IMG/VR virus record: IMGVR_UViG_3300031857_000002
Location: 124,001-188,000 of that record
Length of the DNA: 64,000 nucleotides
Strand: one strand, 5' to 3'
Below, one piece after another: positions 2,517 through 64,000 of the stretch (position 1 is the stretch's first letter; every line of letters starts with the position of its first letter). The position numbers and the translations under genes were made by a program. The notes beneath the pieces were generated by a model. The model made no database searches, was not told the origin of the DNA, and was given only the letters and a program-made list of their open reading frames with translations.

Positions 2517-3599
2517 TTAAGCGGATGCCTGCAAAATGTACTTACCAAAGCGTTGATGGAACTCATCAAAGTTCTTGAGCTTGGTGGGCAAGAACGGCAA
2601 GTCGTATGTGGTCAATGCAATACGAGCACCCATAACTGTCAACTCTGTCTCAAAGTTCTTCATCATGTAGCCCAGGAAGTTGTCTGCCATGTCGTGGAAC
2701 TCTTTGTCTGCTGTCTTGTTCTCCACAGCGGCCTTGAGCTCGTAGCACATGGAGATCACCAAGCTGTACATGGCACTGACCTCTTTGACGTTCAAGTCCT
2801 TGACCTTGCCCTTAAGGATGTCTAACGGGTTGGGCATCTTGCTGGCAACCTTGCGGTGAGCCATAAACTTAACAGCAAGACCTTCACCTACTGTACCAGC
2901 AATTAAGTTGGTAAGAGTATCGTTGTCGCACTCGTCGTCTAAGAGCTCACTTACAAAACTCCATGAACGAGGAGTAGCAAAGGCACGACTGGCACTCTTG
3001 GCATCGAAGTCGTATAAGTCTTGCTTGGCAAAACTCAAATAACCTACCACGTCTTTGTGGATCTTGTTTAGAACAGCCCACTCTTGCCAAGACGCAAAAT
3101 CCACTTTCATCTCTTGGTGAATGAAACGATTGGCAAGCGGAGTAGGCATACGATAGGTAACGCCTTTGTCGCTTTCTCGGTTGCCTGCGGCTACCATAAC
3201 AACATTGTCGGGCAATTTGTATTTGCCAATACGACGATTCAAAATAAGTTGATAAGCGGCACTCTGAACACTGGGTGCGGCACTGTTCAACTCGTCTAGG
3301 AACAGGACCACAACAGGATACTGGCTGGCCAGTTCGTCATCGGGCAGTTCTACTGGGGGAGCCCAATCCATCTTGCCAGAGTCCTTGTTATAGAACGGGA
3401 TACCACGAATGTCTGTGGGCTCCATCTGACCCAACCGTAGGTCGATCATGTAGCCACCGAGATCCTTAGTAATGTTCTCAACAAGCTCGGATTTACCGAT
3501 GCCTGGAGGACCCCACAAGAACAAAGGACGTTGAACTTTAAATGCTTTGAGTAGGGATTTACGAGCCTGTACGGCTGTGACTGTGCGGGTATCTGACAT
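2517..3599 (-). CDS. MoxR-family AAA+ ATPase
   Basis: Walker A GPPGIGKS, Walker B LFLDE, AAGN sensor 1, LANRF arginine finger, ATPRSW. Confidence 0.9.
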   Translation of the reverse strand: MSDTRTVTAVQARKSLLKAFKVQRPLFLWGPPGIGKSELVENITKDLGGYMIDLRLGQMEPTDIRGIPFYNKDSGKMDWAPPVELPDDELASQYPVVVLFLDELNSAAPSVQSAAYQLILNRRIGKYKLPDNVVMVAAGNRESDKGVTYRMPTPLANRFIHQEMKVDFASWQEWAVLNKIHKDVVGYLSFAKQDLYDFDAKSASRAFATPRSWSFVSELLDDECDNDTLTNLIAGTVGEGLAVKFMAHRKVASKMPNPLDILKGKVKDLNVKEVSAMYSLVISMCYELKAAVENKTADKEFHDMADNFLGYMMKNFETELTVMGARIALTTYDLPFLPTKLKNFDEFHQRFGKYILQASA

Positions 3600-3644
3600 G
3601 GGCTGTGCCTTTCTAGGGTTGAAAAATTAACTAACTAAGCTTCT

Positions 3645-3673
3645 ATTGTAGCAAAACACGATTTTCGTGTCAA
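3645..3673 (-). promoter_or_regulatory. sigma70-type promoter
   Basis: TTGACA-N17-TACAAT. Confidence 0.75.
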
Positions 3674-3855
3674 CTGTTGACTGTTGCAAAAGGGCTACAG
3701 TCTTCATGTTCCTGGTTGACAGGATTTTCTGAAGGATCTGCAACTTCGTACACCCAGTTGATGGGCACATCAAGAAGTCGGGCAATAGTAACAGGCAAAT
3801 AGCCCTCAACTAACATGCCGTCAATTTCCACGGCGAGATTGCTCATAGCACTCAT
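3670..3855 (-). CDS. small hypothetical protein
   Basis: AAGGAG RBS and its own promoter. Confidence 0.6.
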   Translation of the reverse strand: MSAMSNLAVEIDGMLVEGYLPVTIARLLDVPINWVYEVADPSENPVNQEHEDCSPFATVNS

Positions 3856-3885
3856 AACTAACTCCTTTTTAACTACAATACACGT

Positions 3886-3914
3886 ATTATAGCAAAAAGC
3901 AATTTAATGGTCAA
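3886..3914 (-). promoter_or_regulatory. sigma70-type promoter
   Basis: TTGACC-N17-TATAAT. Confidence 0.8.
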
Positions 3915-3933
3915 CCTGGGCAACCGCCACAAT

Positions 3934-5079
3934 CTATGCGGGTGCTGTGGGGGTAAAGTCTTTGATATAGATGGCCGAACTCATACACGTATTAAATCCT
4001 GTAATAGGGTTCCAAATCTCAGCATGATTGTTGTTTAGGTATTGTAACCCTTGCACCCAGTGGTTATAAATTTTTGAGTTGGTTTTTTCTGCTAGGTCTT
4101 TGAGTACTGCACTGTCGTAATTGGTTGTACTGCTGATACCGTTTTCTGATTTGGTGTCATAGTAATATTTGTTAAAACCTGAGGCTGCAACAGCATCAAA
4201 CACGTTGCTACGCCCAAAACTTTTGTTCCAATCAGCATACAGATCACCTCGTTCGCGCAAACTGCGATTGGTTGATTTTCCCTGAACCTCGTGAACAAAA
4301 TCATGACTGCACTCTGGATGACTTTCCATCCAGGCAATACTCATCCATACTTGTTTTATATAAAGTCTAGTAGCGTCCGGGCACAGATAAAACAAATGCC
4401 TAGGACCACCAAGATGATGGTACAATGCAGAATCTGGCATCTGTGCGTACCACTTTCCGTCACGTAAGTTAACTCTGGGTTTCTCTACGCCAGTGATGTC
4501 ACATCTACCTACAATTTGATCTAGTCCAACAAGATCTTTGTGATACCTTGCTGTATTGTATCTAGAAGTTTTAGTAAAATTATGAAAATTTCCTGGCCCG
4601 TGATAGATCCAATCAGCACCGTATTCCTGATAGAATTTAAATGTGGTATCTTGATCGTACTCAACTTGCCTAATTTTTAACCAAGGTTGGAGATGAGTCT
4701 TGATATGATATGCTTGCTTGAGTGCAATCAAGTGTTCAAAATTGTCCGACGTATTGATATAAGGTCGACTGTATATCAGTATTTCGTCTAGTCTTGTGTT
4801 AGTGCGTAAAATACTATCTAGAATAGTATGGCTATCATATCCTGCACTGTACCACAACGCCAAATACTGATGTTGCTCTCTTAGATCTCTAACACGTTGA
4901 TCTATGAGTGCGTGTATTGATTCTTCTGGTTCAAGGGTCCAGTTATGCTGGCGGTGCTCATCATCTGCAAAATAAAAATGCACACGATTCATGTCACCGC
5001 CAGCAGCCTCTACTGCCAACAGTTTGTTGATGGTTTTATAATCGCCTACTTGATAGTAAAGGTACTGATCAGAATTCAT
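3934..5079 (-). CDS. PP-loop (adenine nucleotide alpha hydrolase / asparagine synthetase-like) protein
   Basis: LWYSAGYDSH PP-loop motif; no QueC-type C-terminal Cys cluster. Confidence 0.6.
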   Translation of the reverse strand: MNSDQYLYYQVGDYKTINKLLAVEAAGGDMNRVHFYFADDEHRQHNWTLEPEESIHALIDQRVRDLREQHQYLALWYSAGYDSHTILDSILRTNTRLDEILIYSRPYINTSDNFEHLIALKQAYHIKTHLQPWLKIRQVEYDQDTTFKFYQEYGADWIYHGPGNFHNFTKTSRYNTARYHKDLVGLDQIVGRCDITGVEKPRVNLRDGKWYAQMPDSALYHHLGGPRHLFYLCPDATRLYIKQVWMSIAWMESHPECSHDFVHEVQGKSTNRSLRERGDLYADWNKSFGRSNVFDAVAASGFNKYYYDTKSENGISSTTNYDSAVLKDLAEKTNSKIYNHWVQGLQYLNNNHAEIWNPITGFNTCMSSAIYIKDFTPTAPA

Positions 5080-54591: not shown

Positions 54592-57189
54592 TTATCTAGC
54601 TAATTGTTGGCTGTGTGTTCTTCTGCGCAATGCACCAATTCTAGTGACTTCGTTGAGCAAGCGACTGCGCTGTGCATCAGCAGATTCACTGAGTTGTCCA
54701 GAAAACTGACGATTGATGTATTTTTTAATAAACGCAACGTCATCTCGTGTCTGCACAGTTTCTAACATTTTCTTTACCTGCTTGATTGTTTCGGCAACTG
54801 GTTGTGCTTTGGCAGCGGCTGCAAGACGTTGTTGATACTTGGCCATCTCATCTGGGGTTGCACCACCTGATGTGACTTTGGGTGTCTTAGGTGTAGCGGG
54901 AGCCGCAGGAGCGCCAGGCGCTTTCAACCCTGGAATACCAGTCATGGGCTTGACGCTCATGGTCGTTTTGCCATAGCCGCCCTGTTGACCAAAGTTAGCA
55001 GTCTTTGCTGCCGGAGCAGTCTTGGCATACTTTTCCATGCCAGGCATTTGCATCACGTTGGTAGCATTAAACGACGTTGTGTTATTTGGTTGTGTAATCT
55101 TACCTGGGGCAGGAGTAGTACCAGTTGCTGGCGGCAATCCAGCAGTTGGGCCACCAGTAAGTGCAGGTTGTTGTGCTCCGTCCGCTGCCGAGATTTGTGA
55201 GGGTGTTGCTCCTGAGCCATACATTCGTGCCAGTTTTTCTTTTTCGTAAGGCTTGCCAGTTTCGGGATCAATAGCATAAATGTCACCAGTTTGAATGCCA
55301 GCGCCACGTTGCGGTGCAGGTGTACCATCGGGAACTGTTGCTGGTGCTGTGTAAGGAATACCCATCTTGCCGTATACATCAGTGATAACACCTTGTGGTA
55401 CACCTTGCTTGGCCAAGAAATCCGCAAGATAATCTGAATCAGTTTGGTGCCCTTGTTGTTCCCACTCTGTTTTGAGTTTGGCAGCAGTGACCTTGCGTGT
55501 GAAGTTTTGTGCTTGCTTGCTGAGATAACCGCCGACTTTGCCAGCAGCTTTGTCCAGCCAGTTAAGACCCTTGCCAATCATTCCAGGCTTTACTGCTCCG
55601 GCTTGTGGTGCATCGGGCATGTCTTGACGAGGCACAGCAGGTATATTTGTACGATTAGGACCCATTGCGTCAAGTTCTTTTAACAACGAACGACGATGAC
55701 GATCAACGTTTTCGATCACGGTCAACACACCTTTGTGTGTCAAGTGTATGTTACGAGCAGGTGCACGGCCTGTACTTTCGTTTAGAGCCCAGGCCATCAC
55801 AGTGAGCTTCTGATCAATCAACTGGTCGGCTGGCAAATGACGCAATTTTATTGCTGGTACCCAGCTTTCTTGCACTGGATTTGAAAATTCTGCAGGGTTA
55901 AAATTCTTAATGTAGGCTTTGTCGCCTCTGATATAAGCAGTTACGTCTTGGCCAGCATAGTTTACTTGAACTGTTTCGCCGCCTGGGCCAAGTCTTGGCT
56001 GAACACCGCCTTGTGGGAAAGCATAGGCCTGTACTTCTCTTCCATCTGGCAGTGTCAATGTACCACTGTTACCACCGTCGGGGAAAGACAATGAAGGTCC
56101 TGAAGGTGCTGTGGGCACTGCGGCGTCTACAGCGGCACCACCGCCTAACGGTTCTGGACTGGCTGCTGAGCCGCCTGCACCTGGCACTTTGTCCCCATAC
56201 ATGCCGCCCTTGTAATCTGCCCACAAGCTGCCTTGCCCTGGAGTACCTGCCGCAGGTAAATTAATTTCTTGGCCCTGCTGTAATGCCTTGGAGAAATCAA
56301 TATCTGGATTTGCCGCACGAATCAATTCAGGTGTGGTACCTTGAGCCTGGGCAATAAAGCCCAGTTGGTCACCTTTCATTATAGTATAGGTGCCACCACC
56401 TCCACCAGGTACAGGTGGGGGATTGCTAGGATCATTGTAAAAATCTGGATCTCCTGCAGGTAGCGGAGTGTCGTTGTAAAAATCTGGATCACCTTGTGGT
56501 AAAGGAGTGTCATTGTAAAAATCTGGATCGCCTATTGGACCACTTGGAGCAGACAATGCGGCAGCTACTTCTTGTGCACCAAGACCCATAAGTCCGGCGC
56601 CTACACCTTTTCCAATAATACTAGATAACTTCTCGCCTTTAATGGCAGCATCAATGGCAGCAGTAAGACCGGCAATAGCAACTGCACCAGCACCGCCGGT
56701 GGCCAGGCCAGCTAATCCAATCAGTGCTGTTTTAACAAACAACTGTGTTTTGGGATATTCTTTGGCCAACAATCGATACTTCTTGATTGCGTTCATAATC
56801 TTGCTGTCATTGCCAATTGCATCGCGTAGTGCGCCAGTGGCATCATTATAGGCAGCATCAACTCCGGCAACAGGAGTAGACTTAGTGATAGAACTTAAAA
56901 CACTGTTTATAGCATCCTTGGCAGACGTGTATGCTCCTGACACCGCATCTTTACCGCGACCCAATGCAGTACGATTTTGTCCTGTGGCATTGGCACCTGC
57001 TTCAATGGCCGCAAACAAGTCAAGAATTTCTTTCTCACTCATTCGACGTTCAACAATCATGCGACTTAGATTATGAAACTTGCGATAAGTTACATCTTCC
57101 TTCAACATTTTGTTGTGACGGCTCTCACTAAAAAACTGTCGGGTGTTACCAACTACAGTGTAGGTTGTGAATAATTGATCTACTATCAT
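54592..57189 (-). CDS. large Pro/Ala/Gly-rich protein with a LysM domain (probable virion protein)
   Basis: YTIMKGDQLGFIA...IRAANPDI...LQQGQEINLP LysM; Gly/Ala-rich hydrophobic segment. Confidence 0.7.
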   Translation of the reverse strand: MIVDQLFTTYTVVGNTRQFFSESRHNKMLKEDVTYRKFHNLSRMIVERRMSEKEILDLFAAIEAGANATGQNRTALGRGKDAVSGAYTSAKDAINSVLSSITKSTPVAGVDAAYNDATGALRDAIGNDSKIMNAIKKYRLLAKEYPKTQLFVKTALIGLAGLATGGAGAVAIAGLTAAIDAAIKGEKLSSIIGKGVGAGLMGLGAQEVAAALSAPSGPIGDPDFYNDTPLPQGDPDFYNDTPLPAGDPDFYNDPSNPPPVPGGGGGTYTIMKGDQLGFIAQAQGTTPELIRAANPDIDFSKALQQGQEINLPAAGTPGQGSLWADYKGGMYGDKVPGAGGSAASPEPLGGGAAVDAAVPTAPSGPSLSFPDGGNSGTLTLPDGREVQAYAFPQGGVQPRLGPGGETVQVNYAGQDVTAYIRGDKAYIKNFNPAEFSNPVQESWVPAIKLRHLPADQLIDQKLTVMAWALNESTGRAPARNIHLTHKGVLTVIENVDRHRRSLLKELDAMGPNRTNIPAVPRQDMPDAPQAGAVKPGMIGKGLNWLDKAAGKVGGYLSKQAQNFTRKVTAAKLKTEWEQQGHQTDSDYLADFLAKQGVPQGVITDVYGKMGIPYTAPATVPDGTPAPQRGAGIQTGDIYAIDPETGKPYEKEKLARMYGSGATPSQISAADGAQQPALTGGPTAGLPPATGTTPAPGKITQPNNTTSFNATNVMQMPGMEKYAKTAPAAKTANFGQQGGYGKTTMSVKPMTGIPGLKAPGAPAAPATPKTPKVTSGGATPDEMAKYQQRLAAAAKAQPVAETIKQVKKMLETVQTRDDVAFIKKYINRQFSGQLSESADAQRSRLLNEVTRIGALRRRTHSQQLAR
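56432..56532 (-). repeat. 39-bp coding tandem repeat (GDPDFYNDTPLPx, about 3 copies)
   Basis: TTGTAAAAATCTGGATC recurs at 39-bp period. Confidence 0.85.
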
Positions 57190-57190
57190 T

Positions 57191-57880
57191 TCAACGTTCT
57201 TCCAAATAATCTTGATTGCCTTGTGGCCGGCGGTTACGCTTCTGGAATATCTTTACTGCCATGTCGGCATCATTGACATTGCGGAAACGTGTGGGCAACT
57301 TACGCTCGCCTTGGCGAATTTCAAACCCTCTTTCTTCATCCCCGTAACACTCTAACATACTGCCATCTTCCATAGGGTAAGTTTTTACAGGTGCTTCGGC
57401 CATTACAGGTTCTTGTACCGGTGCTTGAGCAGGCACAATATCTAAATCTTGTTGTGTGGGATCTTCTTCAATCTCTTCATTTTCAGGATCTGGATCATTG
57501 GCGATGTCCAACTCGTCCTTGGCCTTGCGAACCAGGTGGCCATCAATTTTATTGTCGTCTTCCAGTCGCTCAAGATAATCCACAAAGGTACGTTTGACTT
57601 TGCTGAGCATGTCTTCTTCGACTTCTTGCATGGCTTCTTCTAACGGGCTCTTGGTAGGCTCAACTGAGTCACCAACCAGTTTGCCATCCATAGGATGCTT
57701 TTGGTAAGGCTTTTTGGTTAGTGTCGGTGAAATGTCCTTGGGCTTGAACAGCGCAGGCAACTGATCCACAGACTTCTGTTGTTTGTTTAGTCCGTGCTTG
57801 ACATTGACAGGAGTAAGTTTACCTTCCTCTACTGTGGCCAAGCGATCCAGTATTGATCTAATGTCTGCTGATGAACTCAT
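57191..57880 (-). CDS. acidic hypothetical protein (possible head-associated protein)
   Basis: ATGA overlap with dps; several xxE motifs. Confidence 0.6.
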   Translation of the reverse strand: MSSSADIRSILDRLATVEEGKLTPVNVKHGLNKQQKSVDQLPALFKPKDISPTLTKKPYQKHPMDGKLVGDSVEPTKSPLEEAMQEVEEDMLSKVKRTFVDYLERLEDDNKIDGHLVRKAKDELDIANDPDPENEEIEEDPTQQDLDIVPAQAPVQEPVMAEAPVKTYPMEDGSMLECYGDEERGFEIRQGERKLPTRFRNVNDADMAVKIFQKRNRRPQGNQDYLEER

Positions 57881-58317
57881 GCTCGTTGCTCTTTCAAATA
57901 ACTTCTCAACATCCAACCATGTTTCTGGTGGGCATCAATTCGTTCTGCAATGAAGTTAGCAATGCCTTGCTGGTTTTCATTGGTTGCTACTTGGAAAGTT
58001 TCGTTGAGAAGATCCAGCATCTGACCATTGTTGGCCAAGAGTTCTTCTAGCATGAGTCTAGCACGTGGGATCTTTGTTTGTCCCTGAATCTTTGTCAGTT
58101 CTATAAAGCGTTCAAATGAGCCAGGGGCATAGTCGCCCAGGGCACGAATGTATTCAGCAGTAGGGTCAGTAGCACCATACACATCATCGTGGATCGCGTC
58201 AAAGAAAGCATGTAGTTGACCAAAGTCTGGTCCTTCTACGTTCCAGTGAAACTGTTTGGCTTTTAGAGCAAAAGCCTCTTCAGTTGCCAGGAGAATTTTT
58301 AAAGCGTCCGCTAACAT
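57877..58317 (-). CDS. dps: Dps/ferritin-like DNA protection protein
   Basis: FHWNVEGPDFGQLH..F, D..AEYIRALG, KHGWMLRS. Confidence 0.9.
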   Translation of the reverse strand: MLADALKILLATEEAFALKAKQFHWNVEGPDFGQLHAFFDAIHDDVYGATDPTAEYIRALGDYAPGSFERFIELTKIQGQTKIPRARLMLEELLANNGQMLDLLNETFQVATNENQQGIANFIAERIDAHQKHGWMLRSYLKEQRA

Positions 58318-58498
58318 TCTTGTTCCTTTTGTATTCTTTAGGTGTGTTCGGCGTAGGATCAGCACCTGTTACATATTTACCTGCTAACAAAGATCCGCCA
58401 TTTCTTGACACAACACCCAGACTGCTTTGAACAGGGGCAATTGATCCTGCGCTTGTACCGCCTACGCTGGCGTTTTCCATGATTTCTTTAAATCGCAT
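58280..58498 (-). CDS. small protein with capsid-targeting-like N-terminus
   Basis: MRFKEIMEN-ASVGGTSAGSIA. Confidence 0.55.
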   Translation of the reverse strand: MRFKEIMENASVGGTSAGSIAPVQSSLGVVSRNGGSLLAGKYVTGADPTPNTPKEYKRNKNVSGRFKNSPGN

Positions 58499-58823: not shown

Positions 58824-59525
58824 ATGACTGAACTAATTTACACTCTAGTGGTCACACATATTACTATAATCTGTGTCACACTATTCTTACACCGTGGCCA
58901 AGCACATCGCGGTATCGTCTTTACTCCTGCACTAGAACATTTCATGCGAGCCTGGCTATGGCTTACCACAGGCATGGTCACTCGGCAATGGGTGGCCATA
59001 CATCGCAAACATCATAGATTCACAGAAGAACCTGAAGATCCGCACAGCCCGGTACACTACGGCATATGGCGTGTGTTATTTACAGGAGCGGGATTGTATC
59101 ACTCGGCCAGCAAAGATGCCGGGATGGTTGCACAATATGGCGTGGGCACACCCGACGACTGGGTTGAACGCAACATCTACACCAAGCACAGTCGCGTGGG
59201 TATTGCACTAATGTTGTTGATTGATATTGTGTTGTTTGGCGCCTGGGGTGTGTTGATATGGGGCATCCAAATGATATGGATTCCATTCTGGGCCGCAGGA
59301 GTTATCAACGGCATAGGACACTGGTGGGGATATCGTAATGGCCAAACTAAAGATCAAAGCAGGAACATTATGCCTTGGGGCATTATTATTGGCGGTGAAT
59401 GTCTGCACAATAATCATCATATTGAACCCGGCAATCCTCGTCTCAGTCGCCGCTGGTTTGAATTTGATATAGGCTGGATGTGGCTGAGCGTGTTTAGACT
59501 TGTGGGTCTTGCCAAGCTACGCTAG
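58824..59525 (+). CDS. membrane fatty-acid (acyl-CoA Delta9-type) desaturase
   Basis: His boxes HRGQAH, HRKHH, HNNHH; DPHSP; FEFDIGW. Confidence 0.9.
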   Translation: MTELIYTLVVTHITIICVTLFLHRGQAHRGIVFTPALEHFMRAWLWLTTGMVTRQWVAIHRKHHRFTEEPEDPHSPVHYGIWRVLFTGAGLYHSASKDAGMVAQYGVGTPDDWVERNIYTKHSRVGIALMLLIDIVLFGAWGVLIWGIQMIWIPFWAAGVINGIGHWWGYRNGQTKDQSRNIMPWGIIIGGECLHNNHHIEPGNPRLSRRWFEFDIGWMWLSVFRLVGLAKLR

Positions 59526-59527
59526 TG

Positions 59528-59752
59528 TTATGATATTTTTACCACGCCGCTGACCACAGAGTCTTTACCATATTGTCCTTGCAACAGCAGTTTGGCCATG
59601 GCTGGACTTTTGGCAAACACAGCCACATCAATGCTGGTACTGTAGTCGGGATTTTTTACCTTGACTCGAGCCTGATATACTTGAAATCCCGGTGCTATGG
59701 ATTCATTGAGATTGTACTGTGATCCTGTGACATTGGTTGCATACTGTTTCAT
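59528..59752 (-). CDS. hypothetical protein
   Basis: Coupled ORF; resembles 12533..12685. Confidence 0.6.
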   Translation of the reverse strand: MKQYATNVTGSQYNLNESIAPGFQVYQARVKVKNPDYSTSIDVAVFAKSPAMAKLLLQGQYGKDSVVSGVVKIS

Positions 59753-60360
59753 TTTTTACGTCCACTCTTCATGTTGGCACACCAGTGATACATCCGGGCC
59801 TTTTCGCCTGACGCATTTTTAGCACGTTGACGCAGATCAGTTACTGATCCTGAACAACTGGCACCTGCACGTTTCACACGTCCAGGACGGCTCTTGCCTT
59901 TGACCTTGCCGTCAGCAAAGTTTTCTGCCATAGTGGATTCCGCCGCAGTACCGATCAAATGCTTTGCATCGCCTGCCTTGTTCCAGGCCGCCCACATTGC
60001 TTGGCCTTGACTTGTTTGATTGTAACTGGGTCGAATATCATTGCCTAACATTTTGGCATACGCATACATTGTAGATGCCACACCTTTGTTTCTATATGCT
60101 GGATCAACCTCAGTGCCGCCGCTTTCTAAGTAATCCGCGGATGGATCTCTCTTCCCTCCTGGAGATCTTACAATTATTTCAAACAGAATATGACCTATTT
60201 CTCTATCGCCGTCATAGGCCTTGATCGACAATATCGGCTCACCCATAAACATTTCAACTGATGCTTTGTAAGTATAATCGCCAATCACTTGTTTGTGTCG
60301 GAATCTCTTGTTGAGAATACCTGTGTTTATTGTTTCTGTTATAAACTCTTGTGCTCTCAT
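59749..60360 (-). CDS. GNAT-like domain protein with capsid-targeting-like N-terminus
   Basis: MRAQEFITE; VDPAYRNKGVASTMY acetyl-CoA motif; QTSQGQAMW; basic C-terminal module after MAEN. Confidence 0.65.
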   Translation of the reverse strand: MRAQEFITETINTGILNKRFRHKQVIGDYTYKASVEMFMGEPILSIKAYDGDREIGHILFEIIVRSPGGKRDPSADYLESGGTEVDPAYRNKGVASTMYAYAKMLGNDIRPSYNQTSQGQAMWAAWNKAGDAKHLIGTAAESTMAENFADGKVKGKSRPGRVKRAGASCSGSVTDLRQRAKNASGEKARMYHWCANMKSGRKK

Positions 60361-63300
60361 AATTCATCCTTAAACAAGTACACTTGTATAGGAGTACCAG
60401 ATTTGTGTGCATCAGCAGATCTATGATGTCCGTCAAGTATGTACAGTTTGTTGTTTTTTTGTAGCACAACAGGATGTTGTTTCATTGTGGCAAATGGTGG
60501 CTTGCCTCCACCTTGTGTGCTCAGCCAATCTTGTGTGGCCAACAAGTGTCGTGGATTAACTTGTAGCAATGTGGGTTTGGTCCCTGCATCTAGTAAACTG
60601 TGTACACGATCTTTTAAATCGCCTGAGAACTTGAACTTGCTATCATACGGCTCATTGGTAGCAGGATGTGTTTTGCCACGATACTCGCTCATGCGCAATG
60701 GCATGGCGAAAAACTCTATGCCTTCCGCCACACCTTGCTTCTTATAGTAGAAACTATGAACATCTGTTTCTGGATCATACTTGACAACTAAATCACCAAC
60801 AGTAAATTCGTCACCGTGTTCTTCAACCATGTTAGCAAAGTTATTAACATCACCAAAAATATGTTCAATAACATCATCTTCTGTGCAATTACCTTGATAT
60901 GATAGATTGGAATCGGAGCCTTCTGCCACATCTTGATTGATACCTTCCGCCATGCCTTCAGCACCGTATTGTTGAATCTTTCCAGTCTTGTGCATGGATT
61001 GAACTTGGTTGAATACTTTGTTTAAGTTATGTGTGACACGCACAATCCATCCTTGGCTAGCAATGTATTGGAACGGGTCACTGATTTCAGTTTGTTTCAG
61101 TGGTGTCCCGGGGTTCTCACTAAAGTATTCCCCGGTTGGTAATTTTCTAAAGTTTGCGGCATCAAACACAGTAAGATAAGTTTTGCGGCCACGCATCTTG
61201 GGTAAATCTTTTTGATCAAAATACACAACAGGTTGTCCGTTTCGTGTAAATTCTACATAGCGTGTTTCATGAGCATTGCCAGTGGCATACAATGCTGTTC
61301 TATGTGGATCACCTGCAAACAATCCTTTAGTGGCATTGGTTTTAAGATTTTTCTTCTGCCAATAGGAGTCATCGCCAGTGTCGATGCCACTTTGTGACCA
61401 ATCATCTGTATGCTTGTAGTTCTTGAGATTAGAGCCAAAGTCTTTGATTTTTTGAGAATCTATTCGTGTGACTGTTTGTGGGCTGTTAGAGATGCCTTCG
61501 GCAATGCCTCGCTTGTGTAGATTTTGAGATGCGTTAGATGATTCCTTTTCGGCAGCATTCCACTTGTCGGCATAGTACTTGGCATCGCGTCTCAGGTCAG
61601 TAACGTCCACCACAAAGTCACCGTCCATAATGTGCCATACAGATTTTTCTACACCAGCCTTGGACATGGTGTAAGATTTTTTAATCGTGTATTTTTTATC
61701 TGCGCCTTCTGCAATGCTCTCACTCATGATTGGAACAACTTCAATCTCTGTGCCGTAGGCGTAGCCGTTGTTTTGAACCCATTGTGTGGCCACACGGTTA
61801 GCATCGCGTTGATCGTTACCTATACCAGAGAATCTATGCATCTCGTTGCCATCATTGTCTATGATCTTCCACGCACCTGTAAATGTGCCGGGTGTGGCTC
61901 GTTGCCGTGCTAGATCATTTGTGGATCCCGCAATATCGATCAGGCCACCTTGCTGTTGATCCGGTGTTGGTGCTGGTGCAGTGTCTTCCGCAGGTTCAAC
62001 TTGGTAGTTGCCATCAAAGTTGTTTTCTCTTGCCCACAAAGAGGCCAATTCATTGGCTTTTGCTCTAGTGTTCTCTGCAGGGCGGAAACGATATAATTCA
62101 CGATTTAATCCGTCAACTATTTTCCACTGTCCAGTTGGGCTTGTGGCAGCACGGCCTTGAGCCATTGGAATGTCTATGTCAACAAGTTCAAGGCCATCGG
62201 CAGTGCGCACACTATAAAAATCATCAGGATGATTGCGACGATACTGTTCAAGTCTGGCCAAAGCAGCTTCGTCATTGGGTGCTAGGAAGGCTACCGCTGT
62301 ATGTTGGCTACTTGGATCAAATATTTGATATTCTCTACCAGAGCTGGTGGCACGGCCTGCTGGTTCTTGCCTGCGCACAGGCCTAATGCTAAACATACGT
62401 GCGGCTTGAGTGGGTTGTAATCCGTGCGGCCCATGTTGGAAATAATCTTCAAGATGAGCAATTGCTTCTGCTTCATTGGTAACTCTGTCAGGTGCATTTT
62501 CTACTGAGTTACCAGTTTGTCTGTTGTAAATTTCATATTTGGTAGTTTGTTCAGTAGGTACGTCGCCAACACGTTCTGCTGACCAACCATTGGTGCTGAA
62601 AAATTCTTCCTCAGTGCGCCCACCTACGTTTAGATTCCATTTTTGTCTGGCTTTTTGCATTGCTTCGAATTCATCGGTAGCAACAACTTCTACACCCAGT
62701 CTTTGATAGGGAGAACTATTACTACCATAAACTTTCCAAATGGAGGGTTTAGATTTTTCATAATAAGGACTCAATGGTTTGGCACGTAGACTGCCACGGA
62801 ACTGTATAGCCTGCGGTGTGTTGGGTTCATCTGGCGCCCAATAGCTTTCGTTAAATGCTTTGTCAATGGCTTCTTCTTTGGTTGTGGCCACAACTTCCAC
62901 ACGACCATTACCCCAGGACACATTCCACCAGTAGCGTTGTCCACCAGTGTCGCCCTTCTTAAGTTTGTTAGCTAGATTCTTCTGCTGGAGTTCTTGAGCA
63001 GCTACTTTTCTAAAATCTTTAATGGCCTGTTGTGTTTCTTTGCTGAGTTTGCCGCCAGCCTCTTTCCCATCGCCCTGCAACGACGTCATGTACTTGGCAA
63101 ACTCTTCGATCATATCACCGTACTCGTCTTTGATGCCATCAGGGTTCAACAACTTATACAGTTTCTTCAAGTATTCTTCACGATACATTTCAGGATTTAT
63201 GGCCGCACTCATGGCCACTGTAAAGCGCAACAAGGTGTTTTCAATCTTGTCAAAGTTTTCATCCAGCCAATCGCCACCAGGTGAACGGAATTCAATGTGT

Positions 63301-63998
63301 CCGTCTTTGACGTTGATACTAGTGTACTTTGTGGTCACACCTGAGTGGATGGCCTTGCTGGCTGCTGTATCCAAGTGTGTTTTCATTTTTTCTAATGCTT
63401 GTTCTACTGCTTCAGGACGACTGCGAATGTTATCACGAATCATGCCCATGGCACTTTTGGCGTAGAAAGCACCAAGTCGACCAAAGCTGTCAGACACATA
63501 CTCGTCACCCATTAAGATAGCCAACTTAACAAAGTCCAAGTTTTCTCTGCTGTAGTCAGGCACTGAAACATTGATGTGCAATCCTGTTGAATCATTGGTG
63601 TAACACCCATATGATTTGGCCCATCGCTTGACCTTGTTTAGATCATTAAGAATCACATCAATGGGCAGGGGCGGGCTCACAAACTCCAGGCCTCTGTCTC
63701 CGTAGTCGTCGCCTTCTAAACTGCCATCAGGTTCAACCACATAGTGATGCGAACTTGTACTGGGTCTATCCACACTTCCTGCGTGATAATTGGTGCTGGC
63801 TTGAACATCTGTTCCTATAGCATCTTGGAAATCGTTAGCCACATCTTCTATGCTTCTATCACCACCACCCTGTGAATACCAGTGAGGCCAATTAATATCA
63901 TAATTGCTTTCAACGTCCTGCATGGTATTGATATTATTATCTTCCAGCCATTCTGATTCTAAATCTGCATTTTGATTAAAATCTTCTTGAGCGGATTC
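60357..63998 (-). CDS. 5'-truncated multidomain polyprotein: amidoligase-like domain, repeated small domains, C-terminal ParB-like domain
   Basis: DGSL, LEFVSPP, STGLHINV, IEFRS; C-terminal YILDGHHR; frame remains open to the window edge. Confidence 0.75.
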   Translation of the reverse strand, partial: ESAQEDFNQNADLESEWLEDNNINTMQDVESNYDINWPHWYSQGGGDRSIEDVANDFQDAIGTDVQASTNYHAGSVDRPSTSSHHYVVEPDGSLEGDDYGDRGLEFVSPPLPIDVILNDLNKVKRWAKSYGCYTNDSTGLHINVSVPDYSRENLDFVKLAILMGDEYVSDSFGRLGAFYAKSAMGMIRDNIRSRPEAVEQALEKMKTHLDTAASKAIHSGVTTKYTSINVKDGHIEFRSPGGDWLDENFDKIENTLLRFTVAMSAAINPEMYREEYLKKLYKLLNPDGIKDEYGDMIEEFAKYMTSLQGDGKEAGGKLSKETQQAIKDFRKVAAQELQQKNLANKLKKGDTGGQRYWWNVSWGNGRVEVVATTKEEAIDKAFNESYWAPDEPNTPQAIQFRGSLRAKPLSPYYEKSKPSIWKVYGSNSSPYQRLGVEVVATDEFEAMQKARQKWNLNVGGRTEEEFFSTNGWSAERVGDVPTEQTTKYEIYNRQTGNSVENAPDRVTNEAEAIAHLEDYFQHGPHGLQPTQAARMFSIRPVRRQEPAGRATSSGREYQIFDPSSQHTAVAFLAPNDEAALARLEQYRRNHPDDFYSVRTADGLELVDIDIPMAQGRAATSPTGQWKIVDGLNRELYRFRPAENTRAKANELASLWARENNFDGNYQVEPAEDTAPAPTPDQQQGGLIDIAGSTNDLARQRATPGTFTGAWKIIDNDGNEMHRFSGIGNDQRDANRVATQWVQNNGYAYGTEIEVVPIMSESIAEGADKKYTIKKSYTMSKAGVEKSVWHIMDGDFVVDVTDLRRDAKYYADKWNAAEKESSNASQNLHKRGIAEGISNSPQTVTRIDSQKIKDFGSNLKNYKHTDDWSQSGIDTGDDSYWQKKNLKTNATKGLFAGDPHRTALYATGNAHETRYVEFTRNGQPVVYFDQKDLPKMRGRKTYLTVFDAANFRKLPTGEYFSENPGTPLKQTEISDPFQYIASQGWIVRVTHNLNKVFNQVQSMHKTGKIQQYGAEGMAEGINQDVAEGSDSNLSYQGNCTEDDVIEHIFGDVNNFANMVEEHGDEFTVGDLVVKYDPETDVHSFYYKKQGVAEGIEFFAMPLRMSEYRGKTHPATNEPYDSKFKFSGDLKDRVHSLLDAGTKPTLLQVNPRHLLATQDWLSTQGGGKPPFATMKQHPVVLQKNNKLYILDGHHRSADAHKSGTPIQVYLFKDEL

Positions 63999-64000
63999 AC

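Follow-up and report, generated by a model that had tools for sequence, protein, structure and literature searches.

What joins the unrelated parts of a very large phage protein, and can the same joint be the place where phages exchange those parts and the place where the protein is cut? The question is raised by a giant open reading frame (ORF), here called P0001, at the end of a 64,000-nucleotide stretch of DNA (the window) that spans bases 124001-188000 of one virus record of 320,175 bp, IMGVR_UViG_3300031857_000002. The record belongs to a T4-core jumbo phage of lakes and freshwater, and near-identical DNA is present in lake and freshwater metagenomes from many studies. The original prediction, made from the window alone, saw in this ORF a series of modules punctuated by the tripeptide AEG, and proposed that a single precursor is packaged and cut into several effectors while the linker DNA supports module shuffling. 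We conclude that P0001 is a polyvalent protein with a conserved linker that doubles as a recombination point. Cleavage at the linkers and packaging of the modules, which would complete the picture, are weighed separately below.

A chain of unrelated modules

P0001 has 1,864 amino acids (aa) and lies on the minus strand at genome positions 184357-189951, equivalent to window positions 60357-65951 if the window is extended. Judged by its sequence, it belongs to the phage "polyvalent proteins": several effector modules, unrelated to one another and each folding independently, follow in one chain. From the N terminus, the predicted order is a Pol-beta-type nucleotidyltransferase (NTase), an HExxH metallopeptidase-like region, an amidoligase, six repeats, a module that we call A, DUF6886, an acidic cassette, and a ParB/sulfiredoxin-fold domain. 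The parts within the window are as follows.

60357..64000, minus strand: C-terminal 1,213 codons and stop of P0001; the start codon is beyond the window (would be 65951); Pfam NTP_transf_2, Amidoligase_2, DUF6886 and ParBc_2; phrog_36119
63072..63881, minus strand: Amidoligase_2-like module, residues ~691-960; PF12224, E 1e-7, above cut-off, Pfam span at residues 700-816
61713..62924, minus strand: about six copies of a 60-85-aa repeat (W/Y-K-I strand, then helix), residues ~1010-1413; sub-threshold DpnD/PcfM match only
61704..61712, minus strand: linker 1, ...MSESI-AEG (AEG at residue 1414); followed directly by DUF6886 in P0092, and following the end of DUF6886 in run X6
61503..61703, minus strand: module A, basic, residues 1417-1483, between linkers 1 and 2; missing in P0092; AlphaFold2 predicted local distance difference test (pLDDT) 50-64
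61494..61502, minus strand: linker 2, ...KRGI-AEG (AEG at 1484); breakpoint in L006, L007 and L008; pLDDT <50
60951..61493, minus strand: DUF6886 module, residues 1487-1667, with its own C-terminal YGAEGM; PF21820, Pfam span at residues 1569-1652; pLDDT >90
60918..60950, minus strand: two tandem linkers, M-AEG-INQDV-AEG (AEG at 1668 and 1676); pLDDT <50
60729..60917, minus strand: acidic 63-aa cassette, residues 1679-1741, isoelectric point (pI) 4.1; shared with other polyproteins, with breaks at a 15-nucleotide (nt) QGVAE repeat
60720..60728, minus strand: linker 3, ...KKQGV-AEG (AEG at 1742), holding the canonical 15-mer; loose contig ends at 60739 in two runs; pLDDT <50
60360..60719, minus strand: ParB/sulfiredoxin-fold module, residues 1745-1864, with a DGHHR motif; Foldseek match; 87 short homologues

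The ORF leaves the window, and two more N-terminal domains lie beyond. One is the Pol-beta-type NTase (Pfam NTP_transf_2, residues 53-108, within a 235-residue match to phrog_36119). The other has HExxH followed by E-D-E-A-N at residues ~365-400, where Pfam matches to DUF6782, M13 and WLM were all sub-threshold.

Structure prediction for each module had been proposed as a check. AlphaFold2, applied to residues 1400-1864, gave confident domains separated by disordered linkers, with pLDDT >90 for DUF6886 and the ParB module and <50 at residues 1474-1488, 1669-1688, and 1737-1743, which are the linkers. A Foldseek search with the 465-residue model identified the ParB module alone, DUF6886 not having been searched by itself. 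The ParB module matched sulfiredoxin/ParB structures (6ky4, probability 0.99; 7bnk, 0.97; E 0.07-0.2, TM-score 0.5 by target) and shows the alpha+beta fold and Arg-containing motif of the ParB/sulfiredoxin superfamily. Its Pfam ParBc_2 match, with the ParB-like motif at residues 1820-1853, was sub-threshold (22.8 bits for the module alone and 18 bits for the whole protein, cut-off 23.6). For the acidic cassette, fold searches gave weak PAS-like matches only (Z up to 3.8) and one uncharacterised phage protein, and the protein atlas gave no match.

The strings SIAEG, GIAEG, GAEGMAEG, DVAEG, and GVAEG, on which the original prediction was built, were all found in place on the minus strand. The six AEG codon triplets occupy window positions 61704-61712, 61494-61502, 60954-60962, 60942-60950, 60918-60926, and 60720-60728 (residues 1414, 1484, 1664, 1668, 1676, and 1742). 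One of them had been misread as a linker: the AEG at residue 1664 (YGAEGM) is the conserved C terminus of DUF6886, given that stand-alone DUF6886 proteins also end in ...YGAEGM. Five of the six are therefore true junctions, and the linker consensus in the C-terminal third of P0001 is [K/E/Q]-Q-G-[V/I/M]-A-E-[G/A/D/E]. The proteome (371 ORFs, 100,621 aa) has 27 AEG, six of them within 331 residues of P0001. Compared with the rest of the proteome, this is an excess under a Poisson model (P = 4e-6 for the whole protein, 1.6e-10 for the 331-residue stretch), and 4 of 5000 shuffles of P0001 in its own composition held six AEG. The count by itself is suggestive; comparison with relatives decides.

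Modules are exchanged exactly at the linkers

Relatives were found among IMG/VR sequences with the C-terminal 465 residues of P0001 and compared by BLASTP and direct reading. Among these related phages, the linker is the exact in-frame point at which modules are lost, inserted, replaced, and reordered. Relative L006 is 94-98% identical to P0001 and is without residues 1488-1741; its joint, ...KQGVAEG-IEFF..., is linker 2 fused to linker 3. In L007 and L008, a different module of ~160 residues stands right after ...G[I/M]AEG, and in L004 the same ~160-residue module is placed after DUF6886 and GAEGMAEG. In P0092, ...MSESIAEG is followed directly by DUF6886, and module A is missing. Contigs from lake sequencing runs, matched at >=90% identity and possibly derived from close relatives rather than from the phage under study, hold two further in-frame arrangements: module A after DUF6886 (...YGAEG-MSESIAEG...), and the leader of the neighbouring 203-aa ORF, described below, joined straight to that ORF's basic tail (MRAQEFVDE-NFADGK...). 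Loose contig ends gather at two places, 60739 at the outer edge of linker 3 and 59925 at that of the tail. Module gain or loss exactly at AEG linkers in orthologs had been named in advance as a check on the linker idea, and L004, L006-L008, P0092, and the lake contigs all show it.

A further joint in run X6, from 59794 to 60715, was not used, as it has 25 letters on its shorter side and unidentified letters between. Parts of the window also occur at 90-99% identity in the metatranscriptome run X17, where DNA carry-over is possible and from which we claim no expression. In L005 (2022-9704), the P0001 relative has 2,561 aa; among its extra modules are one with a cytidine/nucleic-acid-deaminase-like motif (HAE...PC..C) and another HExxH domain, its second.

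A mobile cassette and its 15-nt repeat

The acidic 63-residue module is present in six other unrelated multi-module ORFs (L009-L014). Ahead of it there is always QGVAEG or a near variant (SVAES in L013), and behind it QGVAE-x in four of the six and SLSE in L012 and L013. The DNA of the cassette is 93-99% identical to the window, against 64-77% for the other genes that those contigs share with the genome, and this identity ends on both sides at a 15-nt direct repeat encoding QGVAE. The comparison shows the commonest DNA form of the linker, the 15-mer, to flank a cassette that has spread recently between diverged phages.

A scan of IMG/VR for the 15-mer found at least 120 contigs, and a search of this kind biases the linker logo toward QGVAE. 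Among the matches listed, to which all counts of linker ORFs in this text refer, 101 of 127 ORFs in the QGVAE frame had at least 200 aa, and linker ORFs carried up to five QGVAE each, spaced 150-900 nt apart. The logo was [K/E/Q]-Q-G-V-A-E-[G 57%, A, D, E]. One 12-mer was used at 197 of 234 GVAE sites, a figure that is partly due to ascertainment. Conservation therefore extends to the DNA of the linker, which would fit either a recombination substrate or recent spread.

The original prediction had based a role for linker DNA in module shuffling on two similar 17-mers at 60721 and 60919. Their similarity is real (they encode Q-G-V-A-E-G and Q-D-V-A-E-G, with two differences) and merely mirrors the shared peptide. 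The suggestion itself gains from the 15-nt repeat that flanks the mobile cassette; the case for recombination is carried by the relatives and not by the 17-mers. Within P0001, conservation lies in the peptide, as every one of the four Ala codons is found among the six AEG sites.

Leaders and linkers stand ahead of the same modules

In T4, the capsid-targeting sequence (CTS) is MKTYQEFIAE, in which residues 4 and 7 act in targeting and residues 8 and 10 in processing, and gp21 cuts after Glu10. The T4-like N termini that had been noted in two neighbours of P0001, MRAQEFITE (59749-60360) and MRFKEIMEN (58280-58498), proved to be true T4-type leaders in a genome that also encodes a gp21-type protease. 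Such leaders occur at 7 of 371 ORF starts versus 1 of 2019 internal Met positions, and MRAQEFITE or a near variant starts six ORFs of the genome (the 203-aa ORF and five others). The features concerned are these.

59749..60360, minus strand: 203-aa ORF with a leader like those of T4 internal proteins (IPs), a GNAT-like module, M-A-E, and a basic tail; its start overlaps the P0001 stop (ATGA)
60334..60360, minus strand: leader MRAQEFITE; compare the T4 CTS, of which F, I, and E are retained
59752..59922, minus strand: 57-aa basic tail module (NFADGK..., pI 11) after ...TMAE; found after [L/V/M]-x-E in 21 homologues, with a natural leader-tail direct joint
58280..58498, minus strand: 72-aa ORF with leader MRFKEIME, then NASVGGTSAGSIA; phrog_17311

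Sequence comparison showed that the linker and the leader end are interchangeable ahead of the same modules. With the ParB module alone as query, a word search yielded 87 short proteins, 82 of them complete. A strict T4-like leader pattern starts 52 of these 82 and M[KR]I[TN]EIA[QR]D starts 24 more; examples among the solo homologues are MRAKEFIPE, MRAQEFVTE, and MKISELLRE. Stand-alone DUF6886 proteins likewise start with MRIREILTE, MRAQEFIVE, and similar peptides. When the ParB module is fused, it is preceded by GVAE, AVSE, KVNE, RINE, or SINE, in which [V/I]-x-E is invariant and lies 6-10 residues before the first conserved residues of the module, the position of the leader Glu in the solo proteins. 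A Glu with Ile or Leu two residues before it, the mark of a CTS cut, is found as I-T-E in the leaders and as I/V/M-A-E in the linkers. L010 combines both kinds of joint in a leader-first polyprotein: MRAQEFIIE, a module, QGVAEG, the acidic cassette, QGVAE, and a ParB-like module. Leader-bearing genes of the genome often abut the preceding stop (ATGA or TAATG), so that "stop plus leader" and "linker" look like alternative joints.

The second leader class, MKISELLRE-S, matches the T4 gp24 propeptide MAKINELLRE-S. Further leader variants lie outside the window, at genome positions 211696-213671 and 3568-4176: MKFNDFIVSE, MKINHIIDE, and, preceded at 17 nt by the T4 late-promoter box TATAAATA, MKPFAKYLAE. 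The tail module (NFADGK...HW.ANMK.G..K) is the C terminus of many leader-bearing proteins and is once internal, in L005; it has no Pfam match. Binding to DNA is one possible role for it, and that of a second, cleavable signal for packaging is another. In the 72-aa ORF, NASVGGTSAGSIA is close to the capsid protein of the genome past its predicted cut (NASAGSTSSGNIA; gene at genome 40783-41979), for which PA5oct has NASAGATQAGNIA. A T-S/A-G-S motif near the N terminus is common to several IMG/VR linker ORFs. By their sequence, NASVGGTSAGSIA and T-S/A-G-S may mimic the N-arm of the capsid protein or form part of protease recognition.

Are the linkers cut?

The genome encodes the head functions that cleavage and packaging would call for. 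It has a Peptidase_S77 of the T4 gp21 prohead protease type (genome 43244-43687; E 9e-24) and a gp23-type capsid protein (Gp23, E 8e-98), in the T4 order of protease, scaffold-like ORF, and capsid gene. A gp21-family (S77) protease together with a T4-type scaffold and capsid module is the set found in CTS-packaging phages. The capsid protein is 65% identical to the capsid protein of Pseudomonas phage PA5oct (Arenbergviridae) and those of other jumbo phages, and it has Y-L-K-E ahead of the conserved N-arm, where the T4 counterpart has F-L-T-E. The T4 late-promoter box TATAAATA occurs in 14 copies in the genome, 12 of them within 100 nt upstream of genes, and precedes an operon holding two MRA[QR]EFITE genes.

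In the mechanism that we propose, each linker would also be a cleavage site of the form hydrophobic-x-Glu ([V/I/M]-x-E) for the T4 gp21-type prohead protease of the phage. The cut would be equivalent to that which ends the T4-like leaders (MRAQEFITE, MKISELLRE) on the same modules encoded as solo genes. The modules would be freed in the maturing capsid and delivered with the DNA, like the T4 internal proteins and Alt, and the 203-aa and 72-aa neighbours would be single-module members of the same system. The full model, in which P0001 is a polyvalent chain, the linker is both swap point and prohead-protease cut, and the modules are packaged and injected, is in our judgement slightly more probable than not; its cleavage and packaging steps are what we infer.

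Several observations weigh against it. P0001 has no leader, and its N terminus aligns with the NTase domain of stand-alone homologues. MNINEL was considered as a P0001 leader (compare MKINEI-type starts and T4 gp24 MAKINELLRE) and rejected, because in the alignment with a homologue from a Maribacter phage it falls within the NTase domain. No AEG-type linkers are present in the N-terminal 1,400 residues. No TATAAATA lies within 100 nt upstream of P0001, and just 17 nt separate the ORF from the preceding gene, which has a sigma70-like promoter, TTGAAA-17-TACAAT, a setting that suggests early transcription. The motif hydrophobic-x-Glu is weak and frequent by chance. Among five large linker-bearing contigs, S77 is present in three; the other two are also without a capsid gene and hence uninformative. 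Against 50,697 GenBank phages, megablast of the region and tblastn of a leader-ParB-tail homologue found nothing. The phage is uncultured, no cultured relative has these modules, and PA5oct is without the leaders, so there is no virion proteome to borrow. On the last point, PA5oct is the nearest cultured phage with a virion proteome; it has no M-[KR]-x-x-E-F-I starts, and its paper is silent on processing. A tblastn search with the whole of P0001 against GenBank phages found stand-alone NTase or amidoligase pieces only.

Some of these observations fit a different explanation, namely that the linkers are uncut, flexible spacers kept as in-frame recombination points, and that P0001 is made early and stays intact and unpackaged in the cytoplasm. 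The sigma70-like promoter one gene upstream and the lack of a late promoter and a leader would be as expected, as would the disorder of the linkers, which any spacer would show, and the strong conservation of one 12-mer at GVAE sites, many of which were selected by the search. However, spacers maintained for their DNA would not account for the use of all four Ala codons at the six AEG sites, which indicates selection on the peptide, nor for the retention of [V/I]-x-E at junctions that lack AEG. Moreover, the same modules bear T4-type cleavable leaders when they stand alone, and the motif fits the rule of the T4-family protease, which cuts after Glu. We consider uncut spacers unlikely, while giving them real weight.

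If the linkers are cut, the agent might instead be P0001 itself, through the embedded HExxH metallopeptidase. Autoprocessing of this kind has been proposed for polyvalent proteins, e.g., P1 DdrB (Iyer et al., 2017; PMC5512222), and the HExxH and E-D-E-A-N of P0001, with their faint resemblance to metallopeptidase families, provide a candidate. However, those Pfam matches all fall below cut-offs, leader-bearing single-module proteins have no HExxH, and any HExxH occurs in just 4 of 101 linker ORFs of at least 200 aa, so that a protease cutting the linkers must act in trans. Self-cleavage is accordingly quite improbable. The idea that the AEG cluster arose by accident of composition, or is an artefact of alignment, has next to no chance of being right: own-composition shuffles do occasionally reach six AEG, but many contigs, and three sequencing runs, have breakpoints at the motif, which at least 120 contigs retain, so comparison has already refuted it.

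Neighbouring genes

Other genes of the genome touch on the same themes. At the loci of the further leader variants outside the window (genome 211696-213671 and 3568-4176), a 485-aa ORF has two junctions, SVAE-A and GMAE-D; it also has a small module with Cys (KVRLDPKCWTGKK...NC), found again in L011, L014, and other IMG/VR ORFs. An 865-aa protein (54592-57189, minus strand) starts with MIVDQLF and has a LysM domain and three tandem GDPDFYND-TPLP repeats; an ORF of L022 shares its C-terminal region and has two QGVAEG linkers. The 865-aa protein probably belongs to the virion or to the ejected set too, as a further product of this gene cluster. A Dps/ferritin-like protein (57877-58365, minus strand; Pfam E 3e-22) and a fatty-acid desaturase (58824-59525; E 4e-15), the latter from the only plus-strand gene there, are encoded among the genes for putative packaged proteins. 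Upstream of P0001 (L001 6970-10454) are a phrog_1574 protein, a radical-SAM enzyme, and a cytidylyltransferase-like gene. Sigma70-like promoters (TTGACA/TACAAT) precede other genes of the genome as well. The largest ORF of the genome, with 4,775 aa, lies outside the window at 76833-91160 on the plus strand.

Significance and comparison with known systems

Tentatively, and with less assurance than for P0001 itself, the 5-6-residue QGVAE|G linker, with its 15-nt DNA form, could be a universal plug in widespread freshwater T4-core jumbo phages, at once a prohead-protease cut and an in-frame recombination site. Modules could then pass from leader-bearing solo genes to polyproteins and back, or from one phage to a diverged one, without losing packaging, release, or injection, with the acidic cassette now sweeping through phages that are 64-77% identical. 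A linker that is both cut and swap site would explain how the injected protein set of T4-type phages is rapidly rebuilt against host defences. Cargo could be plugged in freely, the signals for its packaging and release lying outside it, and the T4 "expression-packaging-processing" idea would extend to multi-cargo precursors. A leader, or [V/I/M]-A-E-G, would serve as a sequence rule for finding injected effectors in uncultured jumbo phages. The polyvalent-protein hypothesis would also become testable with one protease and one substrate.

Polyvalent proteins combine 2-15 unrelated conflict-type domains and were proposed to travel with the DNA and to be released by embedded peptidases; a zincin-like metallopeptidase hub is present in ~36% of members and is not obligatory, and Pol-beta NTases were seen in conjugative elements only (Iyer et al., 2017; PMC5512222). 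The main text of that paper has no "linker", has "prohead protease" only in the title of a cited reference, and includes neither amidoligase nor DUF6886 in its domain list. P0001 resembles these proteins in being a very large phage protein with a Pol-beta NTase, a putative zincin-like HExxH region, and a ParB-like domain, with a GNAT next door, and the combination of NTP_transf_2, Amidoligase_2, DUF6886, and a ParB/sulfiredoxin fold in a phage genome is what places it among them. It differs in having an amidoligase and DUF6886, and its Pol-beta NTase is in a phage.

In phiKZ, 201phi2-1, and SPN3US, gp21-like proteases cut after Glu at a 3-residue motif (A/S/G-x-E). The head and ejection proteins of these jumbo phages are similar to the present case in that many proteins are packaged and cleavage is at Glu. 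In contrast, their cuts strip propeptides from single proteins and are not described as separating effectors or as recombination junctions.

In polymorphic toxins (CdiA with VENN, Rhs with PxxxxDPxGL), a short conserved motif marks the exchange point of variable modules. Unlike in those toxins, the modules here are internal and serial rather than C-terminal only, and there is no secretion system, immunity gene, or evidence of toxicity. T-even phages reportedly show segment swaps between short motifs, in work from the 1990s attributed to Tetart, Repoila, and Krisch on "His-box" shuffling of tail-fibre adhesins and on polymorphism of the IP locus. The proteins and the motif are different there, and here the motif would add a proteolytic role. 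The literature searched held no combination of serial cargos with internal cut motifs, nucleotide-precise in-frame exchange at those motifs, and alternation between solo leader and polyprotein.

The closest likeness is to the CTS proteins of T4. The differences are that cargos here are serial in one ORF with internal copies of the putative cut motif, that the giant ORF is without a leader, and that there is a second leader class like the T4 gp24 propeptide. Shared with T4 are a ~10-residue ..QEFI.E leader, a gp21-type protease, varied cargo, and a predicted Glu cut with a hydrophobic residue at P3, and T4 Alt is trimmed at both ends, as the leader-plus-tail proteins of this phage would be.

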